Shown piece after piece: positions 5,749-43,907 of a stretch of DNA of 64,000 nt. The DNA lies in contig BFEA01000016.1 of the NCBI GenBank assembly GCA_003427395.1, positions 1,829,311 through 1,893,310 of the forward strand, in the 5' to 3' direction. A model generated the notes under the pieces. That model did not search any database, had not been told where the DNA came from, and was given only the letters and a program-made list of their open reading frames with translations. Position 1 is the first letter of the stretch. Every line of letters starts with the position of its first letter. This stretch comes from Chara braunii. Its lineage: Eukaryota; Plantae; Charophyceae. A program made the translations under genes and the position numbers.

Positions 5749-6485
5749 TCAACCAGTTGGTGACATGAGTGGTAACAGTTGGAGCATCACCAGAATCATT
5801 TGAGAGCGGCCCCTTTCCCCATGCATTTGGTCCTCGGCCTTCTTGGCCATGCTCGTTCCAGTCCTTTTGCTGACAATGTTGACCTGCCGTTTCACCCGCC
5901 TATGTGGTGCCGGTCTCCTCAGGTGATGGCAATTTAAGGGCTCCCATTGATCAGTAGTAGCAGCGAATGGTGGAGTGAAGGGATACCCTTTCCACTGCTT
6001 CCCACCTGTGTGTCATCAATTGATTGATTAGTGCACATTGGGCATGTTTCATGTATCCGCTGCTGGTCTGCCCTTGTCGTGTGCCATCAGGCGACATCCT
6101 GTCGTGTCACCACCTCTCTCAACGCCACCTCTCTTTCAGTCTTTGGCCTTTTCCGCTTCTGGTGCATGCCTAAAGGAGCAGATAGAAAATCCTTAGTGCC
6201 CTTGATTCACTCTCTCCCTTCTCTTTGATCTCCTTCTGCACTGAGTAAAAGTGCTATATCACAATTTGCGGATGAGTGCTGTCCAGGAGGCCGCCCTTTC
6301 TTCTCTGCCCACAATGCTATAACTAACAGCTTCAGGTGTCTGAGCGTGGCGAGTTCTTCACCTTCACCTCCCGCCTCCGTCTGCCGAGCATCGCATGTCG
6401 AGTCCTGTTTTTCCTTTCAGGCGTGTGGACATTTTTGCCAAGCTTTCTGTGTGTCCTCTTATAACTCAACACATTTGATAGGGTG

Positions 6486-7556
6486 ATGGCTTGCTTGGGA
6501 ACGGTCTTCAGTCTGACGGGCCTCATCGAGACCCGTTATGCGAACCTGTGCCGGTCATGTGGACTAGAGTCCCACCTGGTAGCACTTGATGACGATACTA
6601 CCATGCATTGCTGGGCACCCAGGGAACGGTTTGCAGATGACCCAAGACCAGCACTGCAGGCGGGGGATGCTCCAGTAGCAGCGGAGGGAGGAGCAGGAGG
6701 ACTGCTGGGGGAAGGTGGGGAACGTCTGAGGGTGCACTCACAAACGTTGAAGACAGTGGCAACATATAAGAAGAAGAGTAAGGGAGGTGGGTTCCCTCTT
6801 GTTCTCATCCACGGTTTTGGAGCAACTGCTCTTTTCCAGTGGCCCGAGCAGGTGAAAGAGCTCTCTTCCGTCTTTGATCTATATGTGCCAGACCTCCTTT
6901 TCTTTGGGAAATCGACAACGAGGAGACCCGAGCGTTCAGAGACGTTTCAGGCAGAGTGTCTCCTGAAACTTCTCACAAAACTCTCTGTTGGTCAGTTCAA
7001 CATTGTAGGTCTTAGTTATGGCGGTTTTGTTGCTTTCCGTATGGCAGCACTCGAGCCTGATCGTGTGAAGAAGGTGGTGGTGACAGACTGCCCTGGGGCG
7101 GTGATGACAAAGGACGATTACCAAGAGTTGTTGAAAAGATGCGGCGTCAAAAACATCACAGATCTCTTACTTCCTAAGAGGCCGAAGGATCTGAGACGCC
7201 TCTTAGAGCTCGCCTATCACCGTCCAAGGTGGTTGCCCGTCTGCGTGCTGATGGACGCTTATCATGCGCTATTCACCGACATGGTGGACGAGAAAAGGGA
7301 GCTCTTGCAAGCTGTCATGACCTATCTAGATGACCCACCTGTAAAAGATTTGGAAGGTCTGTCGCAGCAGTTCTTGATAGTTTGGGGTGAGAGGGATGTG
7401 GTGTTTCCAGTGGAATTGGCCACGAGACTAGCCCAGTCTTTGGGGTCGACAAGGGCAAGGATAGCAATTCTGGAGGACAGCGGGCATGTTCCCCAGCTAG
7501 AACACCCTAAGGAATATAATCAGCTTCTGAAGAATTTTCTCCTTGCACAAGAATAG
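6486..7556 (+). CDS. Alpha/beta-fold hydrolase (plant lipase/esterase-like), single coding exon
   Basis: 356-codon ORF from ATG 6486. Motifs: LVLIHGFG oxyanion region, YVPDLLFFGKS, nucleophile elbow GLSYGG, acid in IVWGERD, catalytic His in SGHVPQLEHP. Candidate 5'UTR acceptor ttttcctttcag ends at 6420. Confidence 0.9.
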   Translation: MACLGTVFSLTGLIETRYANLCRSCGLESHLVALDDDTTMHCWAPRERFADDPRPALQAGDAPVAAEGGAGGLLGEGGERLRVHSQTLKTVATYKKKSKGGGFPLVLIHGFGATALFQWPEQVKELSSVFDLYVPDLLFFGKSTTRRPERSETFQAECLLKLLTKLSVGQFNIVGLSYGGFVAFRMAALEPDRVKKVVVTDCPGAVMTKDDYQELLKRCGVKNITDLLLPKRPKDLRRLLELAYHRPRWLPVCVLMDAYHALFTDMVDEKRELLQAVMTYLDDPPVKDLEGLSQQFLIVWGERDVVFPVELATRLAQSLGSTRARIAILEDSGHVPQLEHPKEYNQLLKNFLLAQE

Positions 7557-8808: not shown

Positions 8809-8914
8809 TTTTTTTTTTGGGACCCTTTCTCGATTTATGTGTCATCCTTGCGCGGGGGCCATGCTAATATTCTTTCTTTGTATCATTCCAATTTTAACGG
8901 ATGTCTCGAAGAAC
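8809..8914 (-). pseudogene. U6: Processed U6 snRNA pseudogene with poly(A) tail and TSD
   Basis: The minus strand reads gacatccgttaaaattggaatgatacaaagaaagaatattagcatggcccccgcgcaaggatgacacataaatcgagaaagggtccc-A10, matching plant U6. The ACAGAGA box is mutated. Flanking direct repeats are ctattaatcgtttgt (8795-8809) and ctatcaatcgttgt (8917-8930). Confidence 0.9.
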
Positions 8915-9916
8915 ATCTATCAATCGTTGTTAGGGTATGATGAAACATCATTTCAGTCATTCCGGCTCCGCAGTGTGAAGGGTTGGAAGATTCTCCCCCC
9001 CCCCCCCCCATCTTTTTGGACTCTAACACAAGTAAACTCTGACGTACTGGTTGCGCACACGTATGTCATTGGCGGGTAGTGAATCTAGTAATGGCAAAGA
9101 ACCACCTGTGTTTTCTATCTCACGCCTGTCCAGATTATCCGATTCAGCTGGTGCTTAGGATGGCTGTGAGCTAAGGGCGCGCTGATGATCTGCCTGGCCA
9201 GATTATCTGATTCAACTGGTTTTGTGGTGATTGTGAGGTTGGCTTGATCTGTGCAGTTGGAAGAATAGTTGACCTTATAGAGTTGTTTTCGGGCGAAATG
9301 AAGTGTACCTTTGCCTTCTTTGCAACACTAACCATCTACCTTTAACCATCTGGCACAACCACATTCCTGAATCTCAAACAAAATATTTCTCGGGCCCGTC
9401 GATAGTTTCCATCTAGCTTTATCACCTATCGAAGCCATCTCTACCCTAACCATGTAGACTAATCATCCAATTTTAGTGTGCTGTTTAGGAGGGATTTTCT
9501 TTGAGGTGTGTTGGGTTCTATATGTGCAGTATCCCCCTTCATGCCCAATGTTTTCCTCCTGTTCTCTCCCCTAGCCTGTCCCGGCTGTCTAGTCTGTGGG
9601 CTGCAGACTGGGGTTTATTACCCAGTGCCTGCCTGGCTCGTGATGCTCTCAACTACATCTTTGTCGGCCAAGTGTGCTTGTGTCCTTTCTCTTTGCAGTT
9701 TTGCCGCTACAGTTGGCACCCTAAATGTTTTTGTAAATAACCTTTGCTGAGCAATGAACATGCTTGCTCGTCCTTACCAGTTCCCGAACGAACATAATTT
9801 TGCATATGCAGAGCCTCAAGTTGTTTTCTTAATGGTTTGCACTTTTTTGTACAGGATCTTGAGGCCCCTTTGGGTACTCGGATACTCTGCTGTCCTTTGT
9901 TTGTCTTGATACCTGT

Positions 9917-9969
<53 letters not shown>

Positions 9970-9970
<1 letters not shown>

Positions 9971-11583
9971 ACATGAGACGCGTGAGTACGACACGTCAGA
10001 CTCGCGCTGCTCCGACCAGCAACGTCAGCACACTGTGAGCAGCATGTGTGTGTCACATGAGTCGCGTGAGTACGACACGTCATACTCGCGCTGCTCCGAC
10101 CAGCAACGTCGGCACACTGTGAGCAAGGTGCAAGTTGCGGAGGTGATTCTCAACGAGGCAGGGTAAAACCATATTGTGTCCATTTGTGGTGCGGGTACTT
10201 GTTTAAAGGGCCGTAAAGTCGAAAGCAGCCAAATATGCGAAAGCAGTAAGACAAAGTGAGGGGGGTGGGTGGCACCTCCTCCTTTTCAGACAGACCAGAA
10301 CACACGCAATAACACCCCACAAACAAAACGGAGGGAAGAGGGGAAGGCAAAGGACAGTGACGCAAAGGGCAGGGAACTAACACCGTAGGATGACAAACCA
10401 CAACACGACACGTGAACTTAAGAGGCACGAGAGGAGGAACAAACAGCGAGGCAGCACCTAGGTTGAAAAGCATCGGGGAGGCACATGAACTTAAGAGGCA
10501 TGAAAAGAGGAACAAGCAGTGAAGCAGCACATAAGCTGAAACACATGGGGGAGGCAGGAGGGCATAAGTACAAGTATAAAAAAACAGCAAAGCGGCCAGA
10601 AGAATAGAAAACAGCAAAGGACAGGCTGGAGGGTAGAGGGAAGGAGGGTGGGCAGACAAACAACACAAGGCAGGAAACAAAGACCGAAAAAAATAAAATA
10701 AAAATTGATGATGATAGATTGTTTCGTCGGAGTTGCACCGACTCATCAGGAGGCTGAACCTTCAACAATCTGCCGAATCTCGGTATTTGATGGTTTGGGT
10801 CATGATCCCTTTGACCCTTGTTGAAGGCAGACTGTCCCAAGTGGAACATAGCTGCGGGCAGCAACCCTGTGGAGCACCAGGCAACACAGTAGAGGCAACA
10901 TGGCTGCACAACGCCAAAAACGACTGCAAGGAACGGCATGGCACGCACGACATGCAGCGCGGCAACCATGTAGTGAAGCACAAGGCAACACAAGCAGGGC
11001 AGCCACACTGCAAGGGACGGCAGGGCAAGTGGACCAGCAGCTCGACAACCGTGGAGCAGAGCACAAGGCACCAGCACCAAGGCAACCAACCTACAGGGCA
11101 CAAAAGCAGCAAACACAGAAGGCACGACCAGTGGATGAGCAGCACAGCAGCGAAGCAGCGAAGCGCAAGGCAACACCAACAACATGGCCATACCATGCAG
11201 CGAACACAGCAATTCGCAAAGAGCCACACGCGAAGCAAGCGGGACAGGCAGCAGGGCAGCGGCGGAGCGCAGACGAGGACGTCCACACATCCAACACGAA
11301 GCAAAGCAGCACATGAGCTACTCACATCACGGTTGAACCCCGCAGACTGTCGATTCCCACCACCCACTGAGCCAGGGAGTCACTCCGACGAACATCCTCC
11401 ATCACGACAGCCAATACAAACAACCCGAACCGAGCGGCCCCCATAAGAGTGCAGTAGGCACTCCAAACGAGGAACCACCGACTGTTTGGCACTACTTAAG
11501 GGTGTTCAGTTGAGCATATAGAAATACATGGAAAAAATCAAGGGAGGACATACAACAGACGGAAGACTGACAAACATAAAACT

Positions 11584-11586
<3 letters not shown>
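9970..11586 (-). mobile_element. Non-coding hammerhead-bearing repeat, copy 1, embedded in (GT)n
   Basis: Bounded by (GT)n at ~9919-9969 and 11587-11640. About 10620-11586 aligns with 20225-21046 plus 22248-22306. Contains a hammerhead. No credible ORF. Confidence 0.8.
10716..10771 (-). ncRNA. Type III hammerhead ribozyme (copy 1)
   Basis: AGAUUGU-U / GAAG-GUUCAG-CCUC / CUGAUGA / GUCGG-UGCAACU-CCGAC / GAA / ACAAUCU. Core, stem II and stem III are perfect; GUU triplet; one stem I mismatch. Confidence 0.9.
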
Positions 11587-11638
<52 letters not shown>

Positions 11639-11680
11639 TGTGTTTATTGAGACATAAGACCACCGCGATGCAAGTCGCGG

Positions 11681-12116
11681 TGTCGAGCGCATCGGCTCCC
11701 GCCTTTTTCCGCAAAGGCGAGAGCCCTCCCGGCCATGTCACGCAGGAGTAAAACAAAACAAAATCAGAGACAACTTAGGAACGACGCATAATAACCACGC
11801 GAACTGCCGAGACGGTCGCAGTCGCAACGTCCCTTCGCCGCTCTAGCCGGGTGCGCCAGCTGTACATCCCGCAGTCCCCTACGACAGGATAGGTTCCCGC
11901 GGGGCCTAAGCTTTCCTTGGGGACCGCGGGATGTATAGCTGGCACACCCGGCTAGAGCGGCGAAGGAACGATGCAACTGCGTCCGTTTCGGCCGCTCACG
12001 GAATGCTATATGTCGTCCCTAAGTTGTCTCTGTTTTTTTCGAGTGTTTTACTCCTGCGTGACATGGGCGGGAGGGCTCTCGCCTTGTGAAAAAGGCGGGA
12101 GCCGATGCGCTCGACA
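11681..12116. mobile_element. Foldback/MITE-like element with ~200-bp inverted arms
   Basis: tgtcgagcgcatcggctcccgccttttt...cccgcagtcccc (11681-~11879) is the reverse complement of ggggaccgcggg...aaaaggcgggagccgatgcgctcgaca (~11919-12116), with a ~40-nt spacer. Confidence 0.85.
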
Positions 12117-12187
12117 ACGGCGAGCTGAGTTTGCTCTGCAGGTGTTTAAAAGAAGACCAGCAACATGATCATTATGGTCACGGTTGT

Positions 12188-12249
<62 letters not shown>

Positions 12250-12639
12250 AGATAGTGAATTAAAGAGGAAAAATGGGAAGGAATATAAGTAGAAGCATAT
12301 TTCCAGACATACTTGACTCAAGTACAATGTTGAAGGTAGCCATCAAGATTACACCCCCCATAAGTAGGAAACATTCGCATAACTACCATTTCATCATGGC
12401 AACCCCATTCCTCAGTAACTCGATAACAAACGGGAGAAGGTAACACACATCGTAATCCCACATCTCATCTAGAAGTATATAAGTGGAGACTTTGAGCGTG
12501 GCACTCAGAGACACAAGATTATCACTAACCATTCATTGATCCAATTCAACCCTCCACCGTGTGTAAGAGTTCCACATTTCCTCCAGAGCCTCTTTTACTG
12601 CCGATCACACTCGGCAATATGCTGATATCCAAAACCACC

Positions 12640-12815
12640 ATCCGTCGTGGGTGTCTGTCCATGCCCTATCTTTGCTTCCATGTCTAGGGCCTTCTTGCTA
12701 AACGAGGGAAAGTTGTGCATGTTGATGTTGGCCTCACCTGCCAACTGATTCCTGAGAGGCATAGGAAAGCATCTCAGGTAGGAGGTGAGTAGAACCTGGG
12801 CGTCAGGTAGGGCTT
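12640..12815 (-). pseudogene. Possible retrotransposon gag-like fragment
   Basis: LPDAQVLLTSYLRCFPMPLRNQLAGEANINMHNFPSFSKKALDMEAKIG resembles the C-terminal helices of retrotransposon Gag. Short and isolated. Confidence 0.35.
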
Positions 12816-12949
12816 TATTTTTGTTATTTTTTATTATTGTTTTCATTTATTTCGTTCTTGTTGTTAAGTATGATAGTGTCTGATAGTGTGTGTGTGTGTT
12901 TGTATGATCTTGTGTGTGTGTGTTTGTATGATCTTGTTTGTGTGTGCAT

Positions 12950-12998
<49 letters not shown>

Positions 12999-13399
12999 AG
13001 AGAGAGAGAGAGGTGCACAAACATTATGAACTTGATGGCGGTACTAGTCTTCAATACAACAGCTGATGTTGTAACTGTGATGAAGAGTTGCTCGGTGAAT
13101 ACATGCCTGTCTCCATCCTCTCTCTATTCTACCTTGTCTCCTGAGTCTCAATTCTCTTCTTTGTAATGAACCCAGTCTGGCAGATACTCAGAAGTCGTCG
13201 AACATCAGTAATCTCATTAATTGCATCAAAGTCTCCAAATCGTGAAGTGATATCTTCAAACAGTGTCTCATTATCATCAAAAGAAGAGAGTGGAGGGGGA
13301 GTAGACAAAGGAGAAGATGAAAGATCACACAAATAATCCTTTCAGATCCCTCTCCTTCTCCGGGCTTCTTCCCTCTTCAAGTCAACAATGATAATAAGT

Positions 13400-15864
13400 A
13401 TATTCCTGACCATGTGTACTCGTGCATCAGATTGGCTAACGTCTTTTGCCAACCGAAGTGTCCCTCTGTATCATGGCATTCCCCTAGGATCAGACTGCTG
13501 ATCTCCTCACTGTTGGGGACACGTAGACGGTCTACTACGTTAGTCTTCTTAAATAGTAACCCTCTGTAGTGCGGTAATCTGGTTCACTCTCTGGGGCCTC
13601 CTTGACTCTCTTGAGGACGTCACTATAGATAGGGTCCTGCGCATATGCTTGTCTAACTTTCTCTTGCAGGTCACTCCCTATATCCAAATAGTGAACTATG
13701 GCTCCAAAGTAGTCTGATCTCCTACTTTGAGCATCCGCAACTACATTGTACTTGCCCTTCACTAGCTTGAGCTCAAAGTCATATTGGTCTATTTCAGTGG
13801 TCCACCTAGTCAACTTAGGTGTCATCTTGGCCTGTGTCTTCAACCATCTAAGCGTCTCATGGTCTGAATACACCTTGAAGTGCCTCCCAAGCAGATAATG
13901 ATTCCAGCGCTCTAAAGCCTGCCTGAGAGCGTAGAGTTCTCTCTCGTACGTCGAGGTAGCAACCTTCTCTGAGGGCATCCTCGCTGACATGAACTCTACT
14001 GGTTTATAACCATTGCCGTCGTCTTGCTGTAACACGGCGCCTATGCCATACTGACTCACGTCTGTGGTGACGACAAATGGCAAGGACGGATCTGCTACCT
14101 TGAGGACAGGGTACTCTATCAAGGCGCGCTTTAACTTCTTTAGCGCAGACGTACAGTCTTTATCCCACTGCCAAATTGCCTCTTTCTTGAGCAACCTGCG
14201 CAAGGGAGCGACGATGGTAGAGAAGTTCCTCACGAACTTCCTGTAGTAATTAGCTAGGCCCAGAAACAACCGCAACTCTATCAATGTGCAGGGTGTCGGC
14301 CAGTCTCTAATTGCCGCTATCTTGCTGTCCTCTGGCTTAATCCCATCTCCGTCTAACACGTGGACCAAGTACAGGGCTTGTGTCTTGGCCCACTCGCACT
14401 TCTTCGCATTGATCTTGAAGTTAGCTTCTCTCAGCTTCTCCAAGACTTGCCTCAAATGACCCTGGTGTTCTTGGAGGGTCCTACTGAAAACTAAAATGTC
14501 GTCTAGATACACTACGACAAATCTATCTAACCAAGGCCTAAACAAATCATTCATACATCGCTGAAATGTCGCTGGCGCGTTAGTCAGTCCAAAGGGCATT
14601 ACTATGAACTCATAATGCCCATATCTCGTCCGGAACGCAGTCTTTTACTGGTCATCAGGATGGACTTCTATCTGATGATAGCCGGACTTCAAATCTATCT
14701 TTGAGAAATACTTGCACCCCTGCACCCGATCTAAGAGATCGTCTATCCTGGGCAATGGTTCAACATTCTTGACTGTAATAGCATTCAGACCCCTATAGTC
14801 TATACACATGCGCAACTCTCCTTCCTTCTTGGGGACAAATAACACTGGTGCTCCAAAGGGAGACGAACTGGGTCTAATCCAACCTTTCTCCAGGAGCTCG
14901 TCTAATTGCTTGCGCAGCTCCTCTAATTCTCTAGGGGACATCCTGTAGACTGCACCCTTAGGAGTTCTACTGCCAGGCTCTATCTCTATCCTGTGCTGGG
15001 TTGGCCGCGACACTACTCGTGTCGGCGACTCTGAGAGGTCTTTAAACTCTTCCAGCAGCTTGGCAATAGCTGGATCCGTGGAACTGTCCTCTTGATTCGT
15101 CTATGTGACAGGTTTAACATATGCTACAAAGACCTGATCTTCCAATTGCTCCTTTCTCACTAGTCGTGCGAACGCGGGAGCACTGAGACAGCAATGTGCC
15201 AGTGAGTTATCTACTCCTGACACATGAAACAGACGGGCCGTCTTAACCTCGCCTGACGGACTAGGGAGCCTACACTCATGCTCTCTCAGGGGAGTGTGGC
15301 CCCTGGTGCCTCTGCCCAGTCCATGCCTAGGACTATGTCAAATGGAAGGTCATCCTGTATGAGGAGAGTCAGGGAATGGAGAACTTTCTCCACCTTCCCA
15401 TCTTTCTCTAGGTGAAAATACGCTTGGACTCCCTCTACGTAGTTCTCAACTCGCATCGTGCGGTTGTCTATGGGGTTTGCTAACTTTTGGACTTTCAATC
15501 CTAGCCTCAACTTTTTCAGCACTTTGCGGCTAATGTAACTGCGGGTGGCCCCTGAATCTATAAGGGCCCCTACTCTACTTCTAAACACCTCTACTAGCTG
15601 CCCTTTACTGTCTTTCTTCATCTTGGCCCAGGCATGCATCCTCTCCTTCAACTCCTCTGCCACGCCTGTGAGGGACGTGCCTAGAGAGACGCTGACACAA
15701 GCGGTCTCTGGACAACTAACTAGGCACGGGCCTGCAACCTCTGCCGAAGGCGCAGGTGGTGTGGGAGTTTCCTCTACGCTTGCGCTCACTTCTCCACATG
15801 GCCTAAAAGTAGGGGCAGTTGCGACCCCTACCGGCGGCTGCCTTTTGACTCCTGGGCAGCCCAA
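13400..15864 (-). pseudogene. pol: gypsy pol: aspartic protease, RT, RNase H, integrase N-terminus
   Basis: ALIDSGATRSYIS; [30 protein letters not shown]; in-frame TAA at 14645; MPFGLTNAPATFQ; VVVYLDDILVFS; VVTTDVSQYGIGAVLQQ; HDTEGHFGWQKT. Several stops and frameshifts. Confidence 0.93.
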
Positions 15865-15879
15865 CGGGCCTGTCTATAC

Positions 15880-17055
15880 TTAGGACAATATTTTATGATA
15901 TGGGCAGGGTCACCACAATAAATGCACTGCCCTTGCTCCATCGGTTGCTGCCACACTTTCTGATCTAGGCCCAAATCTTCCCAGGGCTGGCCTTGTGGCC
16001 AGCCTGGGTGCCAACCTCCTGACCTTTGAGGTGATCTGCCACCTCATCGCTGTGGGGACCGACAGGGACCTTGACGATTCGGCAGGGGACCTTGACCCCT
16101 ACCTCCTGCTTGGCGGTTCCCTTGACCGCCAACCCCCTGAGCGCTCGATCCTCGGCCTCCCATGGCCTGGCCCCTTTGGCCCTGGCCTCCTCCCCTACCT
16201 TGCGGCCTCCCTCCAGCCGCGACAGCAGCATAGGACCTCCCTTGACCTATGCTACTGTCCTCCTTCTCGAGGCCCCACTCAATCTGACTATAGGGGACCT
16301 CGTCAGTACCACATTCTTCCAATGTAAGGATCATGTGATCCTTAGCCCTAACCTGACCTGAGATGGTACGCCCTTTCCACTTCTTTCCCTTGTCTAAGTC
16401 CTTATGCCAGAAAGTGGAAATTGGCATGGACTTGGCCTCAAACAAGACCACCTCCCTACTCAACGTATCGTACGTAATGTTGGGCTGTTGGGTCTTGTCA
16501 AAAAAGTGCCCTCGTAAGGGCTCTGGCATGGCTTGATAAAACAGCTGAATCAACTGGGTCTCAGTGACCCCGTGGTCCGGGACGGCTACCAAGTGGTCCA
16601 TGACAGCTTTGAGTGCTCTCGCACTCCTCCACTGCCACGAATGGATGGTTTGGAGCTTATCAGAGGCCCTGACGCCTCTAGTGACGTCAGCAAACCTCTC
16701 GCGCAGGAGTTTGAGGAAAGTAGTGAGGGGGGTAAGTCTAGAGTATGCGATCATGTTGTGCTCGCAATCTGCGGCACGTGCGAGAGACCTGGCGAAGCTG
16801 GCTGCTTCGTCTTTCAACGCATGGAAGGCGACGAGGACTTGCTCCTCGGGGGCGATATGTTGTAAAAAGACATAGGTGTTTATGCTGGCCTCCCAGTTAT
16901 CGAAACTCTCCTCCTTCTTCCCGCTGTATGGGTCACGGATCGCATCGCTTGCAGGCCTGATGCTCTTCTAGCCAGGCCTCACTCAAAATTTCTAGGAAGC
17001 CCATCACCTTATCCAGTTTGGCAGAGACCTCTGTTTGGGCCTGCAATTCCTGCCT
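15880..17055 (-). pseudogene. gag: gypsy gag (disrupted, runs into an N gap)
   Basis: ORF 16044-16817 (FLKLLRERF..., LIQLFYQAMPEPLR, RG-rich tail) lies directly upstream of the protease. Confidence 0.75.
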
Positions 17056-18959
17056 NNNNNNNNNNNNNNNNNNNNNNNNNNNNNNNNNNNNNNNNNNNNN
17101 NNNNNNNNNNNNNNNNNNNNNNNNNNNNNNNNNNNNNNNNNNNNNNNNNNNNNNNNNNNNNNNNNNNNNNNNNNNNNNNNNNNNNNNNNNNNNNNNNNNN
17201 NNNNNNNNNNNNNNNNNNNNNNNNNNNNNNNNNNNNNNNNNNNNNNNNNNNNNNNNNNNNNNNNNNNNNNNNNNNNNNNNNNNNNNNNNNNNNNNNNNNN
17301 NNNNNNNNNNNNNNNNNNNNNNNNNNNNNNNNNNNNNNNNNNNNNNNNNNNNNNNNNNNNNNNNNNNNNNNNNNNNNNNNNNNNNNNNNNNNNNNNNNNN
17401 NNNNNNNNNNNNNNNNNNNNNNNNNNNNNNNNNNNNNNNNNNNNNNNNNNNNNNNNNNNNNNNNNNNNNNNNNNNNNNNNNNNNNNNNNNNNNNNNNNNN
17501 NNNNNNNNNNNNNNNNNNNNNNNNNNNNNNNNNNNNNNNNNNNNNNNNNNNNNNNNNNNNNNNNNNNNNNNNNNNNNNNNNNNNNNNNNNNNNNNNNNNN
17601 NNNNNNNNNNNNNNNNNNNNNNNNNNNNNNNNNNNNNNNNNNNNNNNNNNNNNNNNNNNNNNNNNNNNNNNNNNNNNNNNNNNNNNNNNNNNNNNNNNNN
17701 NNNNNNNNNNNNNNNNNNNNNNNNNNNNNNNNNNNNNNNNNNNNNNNNNNNNNNNNNNNNNNNNNNNNNNNNNNNNNNNNNNNNNNNNNNNNNNNNNNNN
17801 NNNNNNNNNNNNNNNNNNNNNNNNNNNNNNNNNNNNNNNNNNNNNNNNNNNNNNNNNNNNGACAGGACGACGTGATCAGCAGGTCTCTCAACACTTAGAC
17901 GGCCTGTTGTGCAGCCCACAACTCGGATTTTGGGCCTACCGTGCCACACCGAGCAACCCGCCGGTCAGTACCGGTCCTTGGGAGGGTTCGTGTCCTCCGG
18001 GACAGTCGAGTCGTCAGACATAGTCTTTAGCCCTACTCAGCCCGTGTGGGTTTGGTCAACAAGGCCCTATCCTTCATCCACAGAGTTCCTACACCTGGAC
18101 AAAAGAGACTCGATGCAGAAAGAAGAGACAGACAGACTTGACTCAGCAAGTACCACAGGGTGTGTGCACATCCATAGGGCGAGGGGATAGGCTGAAGGCT
18201 TGGCGAGTTTATACCGGCTCCAAACTCGTGGTCAACGGTCTTGGTCAACGCCTTGGTCAACGCTTGGTCAATGCTGCATCAACCCCCGGTCAACTTCGGT
18301 CAACGTTGGTCAACACCTCGGTCAGCTCCCGGTCAACCCGGTCAACGCCCGGTCACTCTCCCGGTCAACTCCTCCGGTCAACAGTCGGCTATGGCGGCCG
18401 GCTTCACTTTCATCGCCACCTTTCTCTTTCCTTTCTCCCTTCTTCGCCTCCTTTCTCTTCACCCCGGCTGTCTTCTTTCGCTCTTTTTTTTTTTTTTTTT
18501 TTTTTTATCGTCTCTCTCCCTTCACCTCCTCGGCTATGGTTTCTTTCACCTTCCTCAGTCTCCTCCTCCGCCCTCTCTCTCAACCTCCTTCGTTCTCTGT
18601 GGTCGAGCTCCGCGGCTATGGCCGCCTCTCGCTTCCTGGGACTGCATGGCACACTTCGCAGGTAAGTGACAACCAAACTTGTATCGCTCATCTCTCTCCT
18701 CTCTCTCTCTCTCGCGCGCGCGCCGTAGCGATGTCTTCAACGCAGGTACATGGTAAGCCAATCTTGTATCGCTCAACCTTTCTCTCCCTCTCTCTCTCTC
18801 TGTCTTCTTCTTTGTCGTGGTCTTCTCGGCAGGTGTGCGCGGCGGCTTCTTCAACCTCCAGGTCCGCTATGGCGGACTTCTTCTGTCGGCGGCCACCTCA
18901 GCTATGGCGCATCACTCTCCCTGCGACACACAACGCTGCGCGTGGAATAGCGGGTACGA

Positions 18960-18971
18960 GCTCCGGTACCA
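18960..18971 (-). promoter_or_regulatory. Primer-binding site (tRNA-iMet-like)
   Basis: The minus strand reads ...ATTGCA-T-TGGTACCGGAGC, a 10/12 match to the canonical TGGTATCAGAGC, immediately after the LTR CA end. Confidence 0.75.
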
Positions 18972-18972
18972 A

Positions 18973-19943
18973 TGCAATCAGACTCGTTTTCATTCACACT
19001 TTACATGCATGCAAACAGTAACGCAGCAGAATGGCGACCTGCGCCCACTCAGTACTCAGAGATATGGCAACCCAGATATGAGTTCACTTCCAATGGTTAT
19101 GGCGACACAGCGCCCATACAACTCTCTGTTCGCATACAATGGATCACCCTGGATATCCCACATGCGACTCTCTGAACACTCACGCACACACACACACTGA
19201 ACCCCAACTACAGCTATGGCGGCTATGGCCGCCGCTACTCTATCGCTATGGCTAAGCGTCTCTCTCGCCCACTTCGTCTACGGGCTCTCTGCAGAGCACC
19301 TCGCACAAGTCGCTGTGGCAGCGCTTCTGCATGGCTCACGCAGGAATGAATGAATGGCTGGGCGCTGCCTCTTGATTTATACTTCTGCAGTGCGTTGGTC
19401 TGGCCCTTTCCCATGCCCGAAGTGCACACAGTCCCATGCGGTACTTGCTTGACTGGACCAGGACTGCCTAGGACTGGGACTGCTGACTCAGCACGGGTAG
19501 ACTCCACCACTTGCCCACTTGCCTCGCCACTTGCCCACTTGCCTCAGTCTAAACGTGGGCAACTTCGGAAGGCCACTACTGGGACCTTCCGGAAGGCCGT
19601 GGACCTGGCCTTTCGTGACTGTAGCAGCTACAACGTTGACCCTTCTGGACTGTAGCAGCTACAACCTTGACCTTTCGGGAAAGCTACAGCTACGACTCCT
19701 AGACCTGACTAAGACTCCTACTCGACAGGTCTACAGATCGAACCCTTGCGACCTCTGGACCCTACGGCAGTCTACCACTGTTACAAATACACAGGTCATG
19801 GGTTCAACTCTAGGGGTCGACACAGGTACTGTACACAGGTAAGCTGGGGACTAGGGATCGAATCCTGAGATCTGCATCAGCTACTGCGACTGGTGAATAC
19901 CGTTTCACTTGGCTCTATGTACATCACTCGACTGAGCCTGTAT

Positions 19944-19945
<2 letters not shown>
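18973..19945 (-). repeat. 5' LTR (~970 bp)
   Basis: TG...CA termini and an adjacent PBS. The left boundary is supported by a second copy starting tgtaatcagactcg at 59646. The right boundary (gtatca|gtgtgt) is inferred. Confidence 0.75.
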
Positions 19946-19991
<46 letters not shown>

Positions 19992-20367
19992 TGATGTGTG
20001 TGAAAACACATGGAGGACATCCTCGGCACAGAGACTGTGCACGTAATCGACACAATACTTCATGAGGAGACACACATCTGAGTGAGTCGAGTCGACAGGC
20101 AATCCTTAAAGTAGCGTTGCAGGTCCACTTGACAAAAAAGTCGAAAAGAAATACTACAAGTACAAGGCGAAAAGGTAGACAAATGACACAAGGCAACGAG
20201 GCACGAAAGACAGTGAAGCGAAGGACATAGGCTGGAGGGCACAGGGTAGGCGGGTGGGCAGACAAACGACACAAGGCCAGCCAACGAAAAGGCAAGTGGA
20301 AGAGCAACAGGCAAACAAAAAGAGAAAGGACCAAAAAACAGAAAGTGAAAAAAATGAAACTGATGAT

Positions 20368-20423
20368 AGATTGTTTCATCGGAGTCACACCAGCTCATCA
20401 GGAGGCTGAACCCTCGACAATCT
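20368..20423 (-). ncRNA. Type III hammerhead ribozyme (copy 2)
   Basis: AGAUUGU-C / GAGG-GUUCAG-CCUC / CUGAUGA / GCUGG-UGUGACU-CCGAU / GAA / ACAAUCU. Canonical GUC; stems I and III perfect; stem II damaged. Confidence 0.88.
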
Positions 20424-21046
20424 GCAGAATGTCCGTATTTGATGGTTTGGGTCATGAACCCATGTTGAAAGCAGGCTGTCCGCAAGCGGAACACACCAGC
20501 GGGCAGCAACTCTGCAGAGCACCAGGCAACGCAGTAGAGGCAACACGGCTGCACAACGCCAAAAACGACTGCAAGGAACGATGTGACACGCAGGGCACAC
20601 AGCACGGCGACGACGTAGTGAAGCACAAGGCAACATCATCAAGGCAACCACACTGCCAGGGACGGCAGGGCAAGCGGGTGAGCAGCACAACAACCATGCG
20701 GTGAAGCACAAGGCAGCGCCAACAACCCGGGCACACCACACAGCGAAGACAGCAGCTTGCCAAGAACGACCTGCAAGCAAGCGGAACGGGCAGCAAGGCA
20801 GCGGCAGAGCGCAAACGAGGAAGTCAACACATCCAACACGGAGCAAAGCAGCACATCACCTACTCATATCACTGGTGAACCCCGCAGACTGTTGGTTCCC
20901 ACCACCCACTGAGCCAGGGAGTCACTCCGGCGAGCATCCGTCATCATCCACAGGCAACACAGGCATCCCGAACCGAGCGGGCCCCCTAAGAGTGCTGTAG
21001 GCACTCCAGACGAGGAATGACCGACTGTTTGGCATTACTTGAAGGT

Positions 21047-22247
21047 TGTTACGATCCTGGCCAATTTCGAAGTATACATTCATCAGAAAGTACAATGCCG
21101 TCCAATTGCAAAAATAAATGAATGAACTTGAGAGGAGAGGAGGGAAAGAAGAAGAAGACGAAGAAAGAAAGAAGAAGAAGATGATGTACTCCAGCATAGA
21201 CCAAAGTTAATGCTCTCCTTCTTTGCCAACCAATCTCCTCCTCCTTATCTCCTCCCCTCTTATTCAAACAAGAAATAACAATAATAATGTTGAATGGCTG
21301 AACCAGAATCAATTTCCGAATCCCTCTTCTACTGCAGGCACAACATGAGGTCCACCATAGCCATGGCTACCCTTCCTCTTCCTCTTCATGTAGGCCGAGG
21401 CTATGGCAGAGTACTGAGGGCTCTACCCTCCTGTCCAAAGGACAACCCAAAGCAGCTATGTCGCTGCTCTCCCGTCCTAAGGTCAACACAAGGCTGCTAT
21501 GCCGCTGCCCATTCAGCCACCATGCCTGACTCTGTCCCGAAGCCAAGGTGGAAGCTCCCGGGCTTCTTCCTCCCAGAAGCGCTGCAGTAGCCAGCGCTCC
21601 AACAGCGTGTCGCCAAACTTGCACAATGAACAATGAGGCTGGGCTCTTCGCTCAGCCTCTAGATATAGCGGCCTACTTGCCTCCTGGGCGGTGACTTCCA
21701 GGCCGCTCGGCCTCCCAAGCAACCGGTACCTCCTCCGAAAGGGAAACATCATTGCAGACTCTGATATTGCCCGCACAGGCCCTAGACTCAGACTGGATGG
21801 ACTGGTACCGGCCTAGACCTAGCCTACCACTATTGGGCCTCTAAAAATGCCAACTTTGTCTTCTTCTGCTCGGCCTTGAGGACCCGGCACATCTACTTCT
21901 ACTGGGTGCGGTACCGGCCTACCTGCTACTTGATTGTTTTTCCTCGGCTCTAAGTGCCGCGAGCCTCTGGCTCTGCTACTTGAGTGTTTTCCCTGCTGCA
22001 ACCCTCGATATCGCGGCCCCAGGTAAGTACCGGCCCTACGGGCCACCCAAACAAGCAAGTACCCTTGCGGGTCACACACACACTCATGCTGACAAGCACT
22101 CAGACAGGCACGCAGGTCAACAAGCACGCACACATACAGACTTAGAAAACTCAGCAGAATGCGGGAATCTCAGCCAGGCATCCATTCCATCGGCAGAACT
22201 TCAGAAATCAGCAGTGTTCTCAGTCTGTGTTATGGCGGGTCATTACA
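21047..22247. mobile_element. Solo LTR (1201 bp) with 4-bp TSD AGGT
   Basis: TGTTACGAT...GTCATTACA termini; aggt at 21043-21046 and 22248-22251. Absent from the matching position in copy 1 of the host repeat. Confidence 0.85.
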
Positions 22248-22302
22248 AGGTGCTCAGTTGGGCATTACAAACAGCCGGAGGAAGACACGTATGCATGAAA
22301 CT

Positions 22303-22336
<34 letters not shown>

Positions 22337-22339
22337 NNN

Positions 22340-24358: not shown

Positions 24359-24527
24359 TTATTAATTTGACAGGTTGTTTGCCTTACCGTTGTTCCACAC
24401 AGAGCTGCTGCAGAGGGAAGGTGGTGTCCACAGTATTTCACAACACCACAAAGAGGTGCGCTCAGCCCTGTCCTTTGCAGCACGAAGCCAGTTGTGCAAC
24501 GGCGTGTGGAAAGAGAAAAGGGTCAAT

Positions 24528-25514
24528 ATGGTCCTATCTTGGTCTCAGATTGGAGGATGTTTGGCTGTCCTGCAATGGTGGTTCTTCAATGTGGTGACAA
24601 TTATCATGAACAAATGGATTTATCAGGAGTACCATTTCAATTTCCCACTTACTCTGTCGACTGTCCACTTCATCGTGTCCAGTCTGGGCGCCCATGTGGC
24701 GCTGAAGCTGCTGGAACTGAAGCCGATTGTGGAGGTCAGCCCTCAGGACAGGTGGCGAAGGATTATCCCGATGTCCTTCGTCTTCTGTACAAACATTGTG
24801 ATGGGTAACGTGAGTCTGCGTTGGATCCCTGTCTCTTTCTTTCAGACAATAAAGTCGTTCACACCCGCAACGACAGTTGTGCTGCAGTGGCTTGTATGGG
24901 GCCGACATTTCGATGTGCGAATCTGGCTCTCCCTCCTGCCAATTGTCGGAGGGATTTTGCTAACGAGTGTGACGGAGCAGACATTTCAATGGTATGGGTT
25001 TCTGGCTGCTTTCTTTGGCTGCCTGGTCACGTCGACGAAGACGATTCTGGCTGAGTCTCTTCTGCATGGGTACAAGTTCGATTCGCTCAATACAGTCTAC
25101 TACATGGCTCCATACGCAACCCTCATTCTCTTCTTGCCCGCCACCGTTCTAGAGGGTGAAGGCGTCGTCACTTGGCTTAGCCAGGATGCCCCCAAAATAA
25201 CCATACCACTGTTTGCGATTGTTCTCAGCGGCGTCCTCGCATTCTGTCTCAATTTCTCCATTTTCTACGTCATCCAAGTCACAACAGCTGTCACCTTCAA
25301 CGTTGCAGGGAATATGAAGGTAGCTGTAGCCATTCTCGTCTCGTGGCTTATTTTCCGGAACCCAATGTCGGCCCTGAATGTGCTTGGTTGTGCCATTACT
25401 CTCCTAGGGTGCACATTTTATGGCTATGTCCGCCAAGGGCTGTCCAAGGCAGCTGAAGCTGATGTGGCAAAGGAGGAGCAGCCTCAGCCACATCTCAATC
25501 GACCACATGCATGA
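24528..25514 (+). CDS. Golgi nucleotide-sugar transporter (TPT/NST family; UDP-galactose transporter 1 / GONST5-like), single coding exon
   Basis: 328 aa from ATG 24528 with WWFFNVVTIIMNKWI, FNFPLTLSTVHF, GNVSLRWIPVSFFQTIKSFTPATTV, STKTILAESLLHGYKFDSLNTVYYMAP and TTAVTFNVAGNMKVAVA; about 10 hydrophobic helices. Confidence 0.93.
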   Translation: MVLSWSQIGGCLAVLQWWFFNVVTIIMNKWIYQEYHFNFPLTLSTVHFIVSSLGAHVALKLLELKPIVEVSPQDRWRRIIPMSFVFCTNIVMGNVSLRWIPVSFFQTIKSFTPATTVVLQWLVWGRHFDVRIWLSLLPIVGGILLTSVTEQTFQWYGFLAAFFGCLVTSTKTILAESLLHGYKFDSLNTVYYMAPYATLILFLPATVLEGEGVVTWLSQDAPKITIPLFAIVLSGVLAFCLNFSIFYVIQVTTAVTFNVAGNMKVAVAILVSWLIFRNPMSALNVLGCAITLLGCTFYGYVRQGLSKAAEADVAKEEQPQPHLNRPHA

Positions 25515-25531
25515 CAGTAGCTGTCATATGT

Positions 25532-25621
<90 letters not shown>

Positions 25622-26605
25622 NNNNNNNNNNNNNNNNNNNNNNNNNNNNNNNNNNNNNNNNNNNNNNNNNNNNNNNNNNNNNNNNNNNNNNNNNNNNNNN
25701 NNNNNNNNNNNNNNNNNNNNNNNNNNNNNNNNNNNNNNNNNNNNNNNNNNNNNNNNNNNNNNNNNNNNNNNNNNNNNNNNNNNNNNNNNNNNNNNNNNNN
25801 NNNNNNNNNNNNNNNNNNNNNNNNNNNNNNNNNNNNNNNNNNNNNNNNNNNNNNNNNNNNNNNNNNNNNNNNNNNNNNNNNNNNNNNNNNNNNNNNNNNN
25901 NNNNNNNNNNNNNNNNNNNNNNNNNNNNNNNNNNNNNNNNNNNNNNNNNNNNNNNNNNNNNNNNNNNNNNNNNNNNNNNNNNNNNNNNNNNNNNNNNNNN
26001 NNNNNNNNNNNNNNNNNNNNNNNNNNNNNNNNNNNNNNNNNNNNNNNNNNNNNNNNNNNNNNNNNNNNNNNNNNNNNNNNNNNNNNNNNNNNNNNNNNNN
26101 NNNNNNNNNNNNNNNNNNNNNNNNNNNNNNNNNNNNNNNNNNNNNNNNNNNNNNNNNNNNNNNNNNNNNNNNNNNNNNNNNNNNNNNNNNNNNNNNNNNN
26201 NNNNNNNNNNNNNNNNNNNNNNNNNNNNNNNNNNNNNNNNNNNNNNNNNNNNNNNNNNNNNNNNNNNNNNNNNNNNNNNNNNNNNNNNNNNNNNNNNNNN
26301 NNNNNNNNNNNNNNNNNNNNNNNNNNNNNNNNNNNNNNNNNNNNNNNNNNNNNNNNNNNNNNNNNNNNNNNNNNNNNNNNNNNNNNNNNNNNNNNNNNNN
26401 NNNNNNNNNNNNNNNNNNNNNNNNNNNNNNNNNNNNNNNNNNNNNNNNNNNNNNNNNNNNNNNNNNNNNNNNNNNNNNNNNNNNNNNNNNNNNNNNNNNN
26501 NNNNNNNNNNNNNNNNNNNNNNNNNNNNNNNNNNNNNNNNNNNNNNNNNNNNNNNNNNNNNNNNNNNNNNNNNNNNNNNNNNNNNNNNNNNNNNNNNNNN
26601 NNNNN

Positions 26606-26662
<57 letters not shown>

Positions 26663-35061: not shown

Positions 35062-37001
35062 TATAGGATAGTTTTAATGAAGCTGATCAAGTAGTTGGAC
35101 CGTCCCAGTTTTGACTGAAGCTGCCAAGTTATGCATTTCATTCCTATATTGACCGATAACACATTAGTTTTAATCCAATGATTACTCTTTTTTGTTGTGC
35201 AAATGACAAAGTATCCATCTTCATGATAAGGAGTCGAGGACATTCGCAGCATCGTCATAGTCATTGTGTTTTCTCAAAAGTGTCGCCACCTCATTTTTTT
35301 AACCCAGGCCCACACTTCTTATACCGCAAATCTCATTCGCGAGAGTGGTGTTTACGTGTGTCCACTTTAAACTATATTTTTATCAGACAAGGCTTCTTAA
35401 GGTGTCAATTTATTTAGCGATGGCACGTAAGGAGGTCACCTTTGATTGTTAAGTCAGCTCCTCCTGCTCGTAATTAGGGGAGAGTCCACATCCCTCCTTA
35501 GTCGTCACGCGTCCAACCCTCTAGGAAGTAGTCTTGGGTACCCCTCCTCCTCAGTTGAGTACAAGTTTTGGATCTCATAAGTCGGGTCGTCTCCTCCAAA
35601 TCGGCAGAGTACTCCCCTAAAAAGTGGTCCACTCTGGGTCGATAACAGGGTTGGCTCCTAAAGCAACGAACCCCCGCCGCATATGTTTCCTAGAGTGAGC
35701 TCTTAGACTCCAAGTGAAATCGTTCATCCCTTGCTCTCTCGCAAAATGTCCCTCAAAGTGGTGCAACAACCATCTAACACTCAAATACTAGTGCGGGGGG
35801 GCATCACCACCTCAAATGTGAGGTTGTTAGTGGTGTTGCTGCCCTTTTATACTTGTTGGAGGGTTGTGGGCAGTAACTTAGCCCACAGGCAAAAACCTTG
35901 GCTCAACCTGGACCCTTGATATGAACCCAAGATCAAGGGTCACAATCATTGATTTCCCCCTAGAGTAAACAAGGGCTTTCAAACTTTAACGTACCTGGGT
36001 CTTTCCAAGGCTGCGTGCGTCAAGAAAAGGTTGCACCAAACCATTCCTTGTGGGACTGCTCTACCCCCACATACTTCCTTCAACTATGCACCTTTCCAAC
36101 CTTGTGGTCACGTTCAGGCTATCCCCATACTACCCCTTTCTAGAAAGGGTTCAATGAATCTGGCAAAAAACATGTCAAAGTTAAAAGAAAAAACAGAAGG
36201 AGAAAAAGGAAGAGAAAAAAAAAGAAAGGAAACATACCTCGTTCTTCCCCATCCCTGCTTTATTAGCAGGGCGTGTTGGAGGTGCCCGTTGGGCCACCCC
36301 AAACGTTTTTTTTTTTTTTTGAATAAAACCAGAACATCTTGACTAAAGAAAGTGATATGAGGAGCCTCCCCTAGTACGACCTCCGGTTTATCTAATCTAT
36401 TTGTGGGGAACCGCACCTGCTGGAAAGCGGGTCCCACGACCCTTCGATACAATAAGGCTGTGTATACCCCTGTAAAACAATGGGTTGTTCGTACGTTCGT
36501 ACGGCCTTCTCCTCCTTCGTACGACCTGTAAGAACAGCCGTTCGAGCCCAAATGGAGGCCTTCCAGGGGGGGGGGAGCGGATGCATGTCTAGGGCCACCC
36601 CCCAGATGAAAAAAAAAAAAAATTATTATTATTATTTTGGGGGTCGGGGGTGGGGTCGGGATAAACAAAAAAAAAAACAAAAGAATGATTGATGGGGGGA
36701 GGTTCGCCCTCCCAGCCGGACGCCCCCCCCACCCCACCCCCCGCCCACGCACACACACACAAATGTTTAGTGTATATTTCCGTGTTCTAGTGGAAGATAC
36801 ATTCGATTTTGCTCATCCGATCAATGGAAGTANNNNNNNNNNNNNNNNNNNNNNNNNNNNNNNNNNNNNNNNNNNNNNNNNNNNNNNNNNNNNNNNNNNN
36901 NNNNNNNNNNNNNNNNNNNNNNNNNNNNNNNNNNNNNNNNNNNNNNNNNNNNNNNNNNNNNNNNNNNNNNNNNNNNNNNNNNNNNNNNNNNNNNNNNNNN
37001 N

Positions 37002-42689: not shown

Positions 42690-43201
42690 TGGACTGATCG
42701 ATCGAGTGTTTGATTGCTTGATTCATTGAGCGATTGATTGTTTGATTGTTCCGTTGATTGGTTGATTGGTTGATTGGTTGATTGGTTGATTGGTTGATTG
42801 GTTGATTGGTCGATTGGTTGATTGGTTGATTGGTTGATTGATTGCTTGATTGGTTGGTTGAGCGGTTGATCGATCGATTTGATTGTTCTGTTGATTGGTT
42901 GATTGGTTGATTGATTGCTTGATTGGTTGGTTGAGCGGTTGATCGATCGATTGATTGCTCGATCGTCGATTGATTATATGTTTGGTCGCTTGACGGAGTG
43001 AGTGATCCATCACTCGGTCGATCTGTCGGCTGGGCGATCGTCCAACTGATTGATTGGTCGTTTGGTTGGTTGATCGATTGCCCTATTGAAGGAGTGATTG
43101 TTCGATCGATTGGAAAGTGGAAAAACCGGCACCCAACACATGCGCGCGCACAAACAACTTGAAACAAATGCGCGGACACACACACACACACACACACACG
43201 A

Positions 43202-43232
<31 letters not shown>

Positions 43233-43488
43233 TGGTCGCGAATATTCCTGTATTCCAAGGGACGAATCGATTGATCCGAGGGGAAGGGATTGCCACATTT
43301 CGTCATCGATTGATTGTTTTTTGCTCGACTGACCGATTGGCTGTTTTGTTCCCTCGGCTTTCCCATTTTCTTGATTGTTCTAGTGTTTGACTGATTGACT
43401 GGTAGATCGGCGGGGCAGGGGTCGCCCCACACCACCCGCCACCTCCCTTGCGCCCGCGTGCACACAGAAACGCACAAACGCACACACA

Positions 43489-43536
<48 letters not shown>

Positions 43537-43718
43537 CGTGCACACATGTGCAGTAGCGAATTTCTCGACGCTCCTCGGGAAGGGTACATCGATTGGGAGG
43601 CGTCGCCCCACACCGTCATCGATTGCTCGATCATTCGTTAGTCAACAGATCGATTGTTCCAATCATTGATTTTCTCTTTGTCTGTTTTGTCGATTGATTG
43701 ATTGATTGATCGATTGAA

Positions 43719-43749
<31 letters not shown>

Positions 43750-43866
43750 CTGATTGTTCGGTGGGATGGGGATCGCCCACCCCGCAGCCATCCAGCACCC
43801 GCCCGCCCTCACACACACACGCACACACGCAAACACACACACGTGAACACACAAACACACACATCA

Positions 43867-43907
<41 letters not shown>

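Follow-up and report, generated by a model that had tools for sequence, protein, structure and literature searches.

An abundant LTR-less repeat family with a type III hammerhead ribozyme at (GT)n/(CA)n microsatellites of Chara braunii

In plants, type III hammerhead ribozymes are found in viroid-like RNAs and in the long terminal repeat (LTR) retrozymes of flowering plants; the hammerheads of Penelope-like elements are of the minimal type I. In this work we analyzed a stretch of 64,000 nucleotides of the charophyte Chara braunii (contig BFEA01000016.1, positions 1,829,311 to 1,893,310 of the forward strand). This whole stretch is referred to as the window, and positions without a locus name are counted in it. 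The window contains two copies of a non-coding repeat flanked by (GT)n, each with a type III hammerhead on the minus strand. Both repeats are old, decayed members of a very abundant non-coding element family of C. braunii. On balance, we take them for dead members of a non-LTR retroposon family, high in copy number and non-autonomous, that would enter (CA)n·(GT)n sites by target-primed reverse transcription.

The plant LTR retrozymes share with the Chara family a plant lineage, a length of about 1 kb, a type III hammerhead and a non-coding, non-autonomous character (PMC4918200). They possess, however, two LTRs of 300-400 bp with a ribozyme in each, a tRNA-Met primer binding site (PBS), a polypurine tract and 4-bp target duplications, as well as Ty3/gypsy partners and circular RNA (PMC4918200), whereas a Chara copy has one internal ribozyme, has neither LTR nor PBS, and ends in microsatellites. 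Penelope-like elements have been proposed as the ancestors of retrozymes and, via these, of viroid-like RNAs (de la Peña & Cervera 2017, PMC5680766), and the Chara family bears on this proposed descent. A streptophyte alga whose LTR-less retroposons seek out microsatellites and hold type III hammerheads by the tens of thousands would stand between retrozymes and Penelope-like elements.

For C. braunii, Craig et al. 2021 (PMC8557442) described Chlamys and PLE-X elements that bear hammerheads, as well as a targeting of (CA)n; they found canonical hammerheads in two subclades of this species, along with frequent truncation and partial tandems. Penelope-like elements, the Chlamys group included, have hammerheads in their non-coding ends and a bias towards insertion in (CA)n and other microsatellites (PMC8557442; Cervera & de la Peña 2014), as does the Chara family; partial tandems, terminal extensions and abundance in the Chara genome are further common traits. 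The two differ in that the Penelope-like hammerhead is a minimal type I (locus L012, see below), whereas the Chara family has a full type III and lacks an open reading frame (ORF) for a reverse transcriptase (RT) or a GIY-YIG endonuclease. The family probably differs from Chlamys-2_cBra and PLE-X, as judged from their published descriptions. An earlier suggestion that it might be undescribed has to be qualified, because PMC8557442 already covers the hammerheads of Chlamys and PLE-X as well as the use of (CA)n targets; a (CA)n family with a type III hammerhead stands. The present analysis adds a (CA)n-associated family of ~1 kb with a modular left end, a type I contrast in a Chara Penelope-like element, and a conflict over the template strand. 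The view that the family fits neither the retrozyme nor the Penelope template also holds, since it has one internal type III ribozyme, lacks the hallmarks of an LTR retrozyme and does not appear to be the tail of the sampled Penelope-like elements.

More distant parallels exist. The R1-clade elements Mino and Waldo, reportedly described by Kojima and Fujiwara in 2003, insert into (AC)n and (ACAY)n, respectively; they resemble the Chara family in using a specific simple repeat, present on both flanks, and they are not known to carry a ribozyme. The CORE-SINE and V-SINE superfamilies of short interspersed elements (SINEs) combine a conserved core with variable tails derived from long interspersed elements (LINEs). 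A central domain common to families with different tails is also seen here, whereas SINEs are not known to have a ribozyme and possess RNA polymerase III (Pol III) heads; the Chara unit contains internal T-runs that would stop Pol III. In L1Tc, a ribozyme processes retroelement RNA. Non-LTR retrozymes of animals were reportedly described by Cervera and de la Peña in 2020. They are likewise non-autonomous and LTR-less, bear a ribozyme and have a proposed origin from Penelope-like pseudo-LTRs (Li, Clavereau & Pollet 2026, preprint, 10.64898/2026.07.22.740005), but consist of tandem units of 170-400 nt with type I ribozymes and form small circles, whereas the Chara copies are single, dispersed, 1.1-1.6 kb long and contain one type III ribozyme each. 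PMC5680766 cites the hepatitis delta virus (HDV)-like ribozyme of R2 as processing retroelement RNA. With R2 and L1Tc the Chara family would share a self-cleaving RNA in a non-LTR element that is thought to define an RNA end, and in sister Chara families some copies begin close to the cleavage site. The Chara ribozyme, in contrast, belongs to another class and is found ~820 nt into the copy instead of at the 5' terminus.

Anatomy, copies and microsatellite association

The preliminary description of the window had reported two non-coding repeat copies with (GT)n on both sides and a common right junction, and the same was observed by BLAST, Tandem Repeats Finder (TRF) and inspection of the sequence. 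As shown in Table 1, copy 1 (9970-11586) lies between (GT)25 and (TG)28, and copy 2 (20003-22306) between (GT)n on the left and (TG)15 on the right. The extent of the repeat had to be narrowed: homology is limited to 10626-11586 and 20230-22306, with 76-83% identity (BLAST, MAFFT), and the left parts 9970-10625 (656 nt) and 20003-20229 (227 nt) are no more alike than shuffled sequence, so a homology of the left parts was rejected. In both copies the right end of the ~960-nt conserved unit, ...AAACTGATT, adjoins (GT)n directly, the junction being aaactgatt followed by (GT)n. Read on the minus strand, the unit of copy 1 begins with the AATCAG end and an ~820-nt T/G-rich body with internal repeats of ~85-105 nt, followed by the hammerhead, a T-rich run and a conserved block ending in CCAGCCT. 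The solo LTR inside copy 2 had been correctly recognized as a later insertion; this 1.19-kb sequence (21050-22234) has TG..CA ends and an AAGGT duplication, and it is partly and distantly similar to 55906-56377.

The spacing and adjacency of the two copies are uncertain, because an assembly gap (17056-17860) separates them; no claim made here depends on either. The gap reaches neither copy and lies inside a Ty3/gypsy-like remnant (pol ORFs at 13535-16817, minus strand), around which no LTR pair was found. A second gap of three N (22337-22339) splits the (TG)15 of copy 2 from (GA)38; a compound (GT)n(GA)n array beside a copy in locus L009 was sequenced through without a gap.

Besides the two window copies, 11 further copies were identified in C. 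braunii DNA, giving 13 copies on 10 contigs. Two of these lie in L001 (BFBZ01003173.1, a metagenome-labelled contig) and nine in eight Chara loci, L003-L010 (250 kb). L002 was discarded, having only a chance match of 22-24 nt and no ribozyme. The abundance was estimated from read depth (85% likeness, DNA contigs of run X1). The word depths in Table 1, which are not copy numbers, suggest by order of magnitude thousands of copies of the body and tens of thousands of ribozymes. A depth thousands-fold over single copy, together with the 13 copies, shows, as had been proposed, a dispersed family and not a local duplication. Moreover, the loose ends of the reads indicate that many other families have only the ribozyme of ~40-60 nt in common with the unit. 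Some repeats of the genome with (GT)n on their flanks thus belong to the Chara family.

Table 1. Features of the two window copies and word depths along copy 1 and its flank (word depths are not copy numbers).
Feature	Position	Strand	Evidence or value
(GT)25 microsatellite, left of copy 1	9920-9969		TRF, sequence
Additional 84-nt repeat of the left end of copy 1, then (TG)4	9970-10053	-	TRF period 84, 96% identity; direct-repeat family D3
Left module of copy 1, variable; forms the 3' side when read on the ribozyme strand	10054-10625	-	lower-copy repeat, unlike copy 2
Conserved unit of copy 1	10626-11586	-	BLAST, alignment, read depth
Type III hammerhead of copy 1	10716-10771	-	Rfam RF00008, 37.5 bits
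(TG)28 microsatellite, right of copy 1	11587-11643		TRF
(GT)n microsatellite, left of copy 2, ending GATGATGTGTGTG	19946-20002		TRF, sequence
Variable left module of copy 2	20003-20229	-	71% identity over ~390 nt to L004 25322-25663
Conserved unit of copy 2, larger part	20230-21049	-	BLAST, alignment
Type III hammerhead of copy 2	20368-20423	-	Rfam RF00008, 30 bits
Solo LTR, later insertion, not part of the element	21050-22234		ends TG..CA; AAGGT (5 bp) duplicated at the target
Conserved unit of copy 2, final ~70 nt, ending ...GAAACTGATT	22235-22305	-	alignment
(TG)15 right of copy 2, then 3-N gap and (GA)38	22306-22336		TRF, sequence
Word depth, single-copy flank			8.4
Word depth, left module of copy 1			440-1400 (50-170 times single-copy flank)
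Word depth	10626-10713		~2000
Word depth, body	10815-11521		40,000-134,000
Word depth, 100-nt bin with ribozyme			474,036

The tie to (GT)n/(CA)n proposed for the two window copies extends to the family. In 11 of the 13 copies the right end reads ...CATAAAACTGATT, exactly or nearly so, and (GT)n begins 0-6 letters further on; in 10 of 12 a (GT)n array lies 250-780 nt to the left of the ribozyme. Chance is excluded, because (GT/CA)n arrays of at least 8 units occur in the sampled loci only about once per ~6 kb. Approximately 20 of the 53 (GT/CA)n arrays border a copy, in a sample that had been picked for holding copies. Most copies have a microsatellite at both ends and measure ~1.1-1.6 kb.

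At least five types of left module were distinguished among the copies. The type of copy 2 recurs in the L004 copy (25322-25663), L003 and L005b have part of another type in common, and the type of copy 1 also stands alone in L011 (13927-14158), where it ends at (CA)26. In L005, an unrelated 85-nt terminus is duplicated in the same way as that of copy 1 (9054-9137 and 9321-9405), and a variable A-rich tract of up to A24 joins the left module to the ribozyme. L001 contains a left-truncated copy, then (GT)20, then a full copy, the pair being 90% identical. In L004, the copy ends at (GT)29, and a 5'-truncated copy of a sister family, T (26559-26660), adjoins this array in the same orientation; from this arrangement, the microsatellite appears to have been hit repeatedly. 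An otherwise complete copy in L009 has its ~320-nt hammerhead segment (9839-10158) inverted in place. Twin priming was rejected as the cause of this arrangement, given that the left module upstream keeps its normal orientation, which indicates an in-place inversion of ~320 nt.

The absence of LTR ends, PBS and a credible ORF noted in the preliminary description agrees with tests for direct repeats, PBS 12-mers and ORF conservation. No terminal inverted repeats or long terminal direct repeats were detected in the window copies, and no copy has a poly(A) tail, LTRs or a conserved ORF. The best 12-mer match to a tRNA-Met PBS has 3-5 mismatches in five full copies. No target duplication is discernible at the element ends, which sit in (GT)n. 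These characteristics decide against an LTR retrozyme of the plant type, whether complete or as a remnant, moved by Ty3/gypsy elements. A type III hammerhead in a streptophyte and the presence of Ty3/gypsy elements nearby would agree with such an origin; the single ribozyme per copy, the lack of terminal direct repeats and of a 4-bp duplication, the poor PBS matches and the ends in microsatellites refute it on anatomy and leave it extremely improbable.

Open frames are present in all frames of the unit, are not conserved between copies, and are a composition artefact, because one strand is T-poor. A protein search with a 298-aa minus-strand ORF of the unit gave no matches, and a plus-strand pseudo-protein matched annotated gene models of GCA_003427395.1. 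In P0001-P0009, which are Chara gene models from L003-L010 (L-PSP/RidA-like, trypsin-like, leucine-rich repeat, gypsy pol), some exons are translated repeat. These exons are likely annotation artefacts from the stop-poor strand. No RT or GIY-YIG endonuclease ORF adjoins any of the 13 copies, so that the longer, enzyme-bearing copies which the preliminary description had proposed to look for are missing among them. Apart from the hammerhead, no Rfam or tRNA-like match was found in the unit, the A and B boxes having had no dedicated search. On the ribozyme strand, the unit contains internal T-runs, T5 to T7 in length; Pol III transcription stopping at the T-run after the ribozyme was ruled out on account of these conserved upstream runs.

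The hammerhead ribozyme

At the Rfam gathering threshold no ribozyme match was obtained in the window copies. The gathering score of Hammerhead_3 (RF00008) is 48.5 bits, and the matches presented here were reported by E-value. A type III hammerhead had been predicted at the same minus-strand position in both copies, and it was found in each at homologous places; both ribozymes stay below the threshold (37.5 bits, E 4e-5 in copy 1; 30 bits, E 5e-3 in copy 2) and bear private damage. The motifs CUGAUGA and GAAA are kept in both. Copy 1 has an intact core and the triplet GUU, with a predicted cut between 10764 and 10763, and its minimum-energy fold is a three-way junction. The mismatch in its stem I is private, as 97% of the family reads carry C at 10761. 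Copy 2 has the triplet GUC and an intact stem I, and its stem II is broken by substitutions.

The ribozyme of L003 (56239-56294) is identical to the family consensus and scores 46.0 bits, that of L001 scores 45 bits, and that of L006 is one loop letter off the consensus. None of the family's ribozymes that were scored reaches 48.5 bits (E-values 2e-8 to 5e-3), and the family thus falls under the Rfam threshold. Each copy has one ribozyme, with a stem III of 7 bp. The core, the NUH triplet and the three stems (stem III open) were found in copies 1 and 2, L001, L003, L006 and L007, and the stem cells are paired in 92% of cases, against 37-55% in slid controls. In most other copies the core or a stem is mutated, as expected of dead copies.

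Two sister families, S and T, were recognized in the loci; S adjoins (TA)n and T adjoins (CA)n. The ribozyme is the only segment alignable between them and the present family, and this is our main argument for selection on the ribozyme. Additionally, stem III has C-G in S and T where this family has U-A, and one U-G intermediate was observed.

Template strand and candidate partners

In the interpretation we prefer, from the features described above we infer retrotransposition. The ribozyme strand would start with a fixed 5' end (AATCAG...) and an ~820-nt non-coding T/G-rich leader, continue with one type III hammerhead, a T-rich run and a short conserved block, and finish with a variable 3' module ending at (CA)n. 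Target-primed reverse transcription would place copies of the element RNA in (CA)n·(GT)n microsatellites, with the enzyme supplied in trans, most plausibly by a microsatellite-associated Chlamys-type Penelope-like element of the Chara genome. The hammerhead may represent a conserved core that the family has in common with sister families, which possess other tails and land in (TA)n or (CA)n. By analogy, its function could be RNA trimming, a role suggested in Penelope-like elements and demonstrated in the case of R2. A bolder version, which we put forward only tentatively, is that of a SINE-like superfamily with a predicted active type III hammerhead core, 3' tails choosing (CA)n or (TA)n, and an RNA end set by the ribozyme. 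If this were true, the superfamily would be a non-LTR, Penelope-dependent ancestor or cousin of the plant retrozymes, and the viroid-style type III hammerhead in mobile elements would predate land plants.

We moderately favour the ribozyme (minus) strand as the template. In copy 1 and in L005a, whose modules are unrelated, the left-terminal 84-85 nt are repeated past a short microsatellite. On the ribozyme strand this duplication reads as a full copy followed by a severely 5'-truncated mini-copy of the 3' end, which an early template switch, or aborted and restarted priming at the 3' end, would leave. Moreover, additional letters that vary between copies (GA, CT, TTCT) are found at the right junction, in the manner of 5' junctions, and the orientation of the hammerhead relative to (CA)n is always the same. 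In families S and T, the 3' end on the ribozyme strand is constant and adjoins the microsatellite, while the 5' ends are truncated; one T copy is cut within the ribozyme and flanked by (CA)4 and (AC)29, and hundreds of sister-family reads enter (TA)n no more than 3 nt from the cleavage site.

Several observations weigh against this interpretation, the first of them concerning the ribozyme and its RNA. The covariation is modest (score 0.096; 20 of 500 shuffles scored at least as high), and the double change observed in L005b might stem from CpG decay affecting both strands. Cleavage in vivo, which we would expect, had been proposed for checking through RNA ends at the cleavage site or circular junctions, and neither appeared in the oligo-dT RNA-seq: in these poly(A)-selected libraries read ends do not pile up at 10764/10763, and no end-to-end joints of circular RNA were seen, microsatellite ends having been skipped. 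In stranded oligo-dT RNA-seq, the body RNA shows a ratio of ~10:1 in favour of first mates on the minus strand. We read this as plus-strand RNA, antisense to the ribozyme, because a flanking transcript looks plus-stranded and the first mate usually represents the opposite strand; the strand assignment of the library rests on that one transcript and the general first-mate rule. The transcript is T-rich on the plus strand and has UGUAA/AAUAA ~25 nt before the contig end at 9762.

Other such points concern the arrangement of the element. Its constant part is the right 960 nt and its variable part the left, which also fits a plus-strand element with a conserved 3' end. On the plus strand the L001 pair resembles a partial tandem of the Penelope type, although a deletion is possible there because a neighbouring repeat is truncated at the same joint. 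Additionally, the Penelope-like element of L011 has (TG)n, and not (CA)n, after its sense-strand 3' end.

These data have to be weighed together with the opposite polarity, in which a plus-strand RNA with a 3' end ...ACTGATT and a (GU)n tail would prime on (CA)n, the hammerhead would be an antisense relic, either inherited or captured and of no function in this family, and the left part would be a variable or chimeric 5' region. The excess of body RNA on the presumed plus strand speaks for it, as do the constancy of all 11 intact right ends beside left modules of five or more types, the position of the left-truncated L001 copy upstream of its neighbour, and the sense-strand (TG)n of L011. The A-rich tract at the joint of module and ribozyme (A24 in L005) would be like a template-switch tail, and the ribozyme segment can be inverted in place, as in L009. 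What speaks for the ribozyme strand instead is that the hammerhead alone is kept across families that are otherwise unalignable, with a compensatory change in stem III, which points to selection on ribozyme-strand RNA. Furthermore, the 84-85-nt duplications would become 3'-truncated 5' fragments, which are not a target-primed product; the sister families show ribozyme-strand 5' truncation; and the RNA argument is weakened because oligo-dT capture favours the A-rich plus strand whichever strand functions. We therefore consider the opposite polarity rather unlikely, and retain the ribozyme strand as the probable template.

With regard to the partner, four Penelope-like loci were sampled (L007, L011, L012 and L013), found via the RT ORF in L007. 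The L011 element (P0010) is of the Chlamys type and a candidate source of the enzyme: it has an RT, a CxC motif and, at its N-terminus, what remains of a GIY-YIG endonuclease, and its sense-strand 3' end abuts (TG)18. In L012, a type I hammerhead (14685-14733, plus strand; 35.1 bits, Rfam cut-off 34) lies ~970 nt after the RT ORF of a zinc-knuckle Chlamys-type element and ~230 nt before a T16 run. It is the only ribozyme found among the sampled Chara Penelope-like elements, so that in this small sample the Penelope-type ribozyme differs in topology from that of the present family. A Penelope-like or site-specific non-LTR partner, as invoked in the preliminary description, may move the family. 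A further point against our interpretation is that L011-L013 have no sequence in common with the conserved unit, the 3' end of the L007 element is lost in a gap, and no partner element is joined to the unit in the sampled loci. The sole homology is a separate left module of the copy 1 type ~250 nt past the end of the L011 element, across an assembly artefact. This artefact (13682-13720), directly after (TG)18, is a Nextera mate-pair junction adapter with two inverted transposase mosaic ends, and because of it the DNA on either side is perhaps not contiguous.

The same loci bear on the idea that the unit is the untranslated region (UTR) or pseudo-LTR of an already described autonomous element, Chlamys-2_cBra or PLE-X (Craig et al. 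2021), the copies being truncated or internally deleted. The hammerheads, high copy number, (CA)n targeting, truncation and partial tandems reported for C. braunii in PMC8557442 would suit it, and the L001 partial tandem and the terminal duplications are Penelope-like traits. We nevertheless consider it improbable, as an RT or endonuclease ORF adjoins 0 of the 13 copies, most copies are bounded by microsatellites at ~1.1-1.6 kb, the sampled Penelope-like loci (a sample that does not extend to PLE-X) share no sequence with the unit, and the zinc-knuckle type of L012 bears a type I hammerhead and not a type III.

Two further proposals were dismissed for this family. Shuffling of modules through circular RNA predicts breakpoints at the cleavage site, and the shared sequence continues ~150 nt beyond the ribozyme. 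The LINE of the window (see below) was excluded as a partner, since it ends in poly(A) and not in (GT)n.

Other features of the window and the loci

The L1-like LINE is located at 37002-42082 (minus strand), with APE and RT ORFs and a poly(A) end at the gap 36833-37001; three (CA)n arrays are found on its 5' side (43176-43906). Between the (TG)28 of copy 1 and (GA)27 there is a palindromic foldback of ~440 nt (11678-12119), with arms 83% alike, a depth of up to 108,000, and false Rfam matches to snaR-A and miRNA. A truncated copy of this foldback abuts a partial element in L001 (5640-5855).

Sequences of the small nuclear RNA (snRNA) U6 are frequent, being present in the window (8812-8914, minus strand), L003 (30934-31034), L006 (14107-14207, 16993-17093 and 25510-25608) and L013 (2372-2429 and 25536-25636). 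The window copy scores 58 bits and has internal changes and an A-run instead of a U-tail, like a retropseudogene made by a LINE; several of the others score 82-103 bits and may be genes. The flanking transcript mentioned above (~9012-9762) may represent either a 3' UTR or an independent RNA that is non-coding. Finally, uninterrupted ORFs encode an alpha/beta hydrolase (6483-7556, plus strand) and a protein of the triose-phosphate-transporter family (24375-25514, plus strand).

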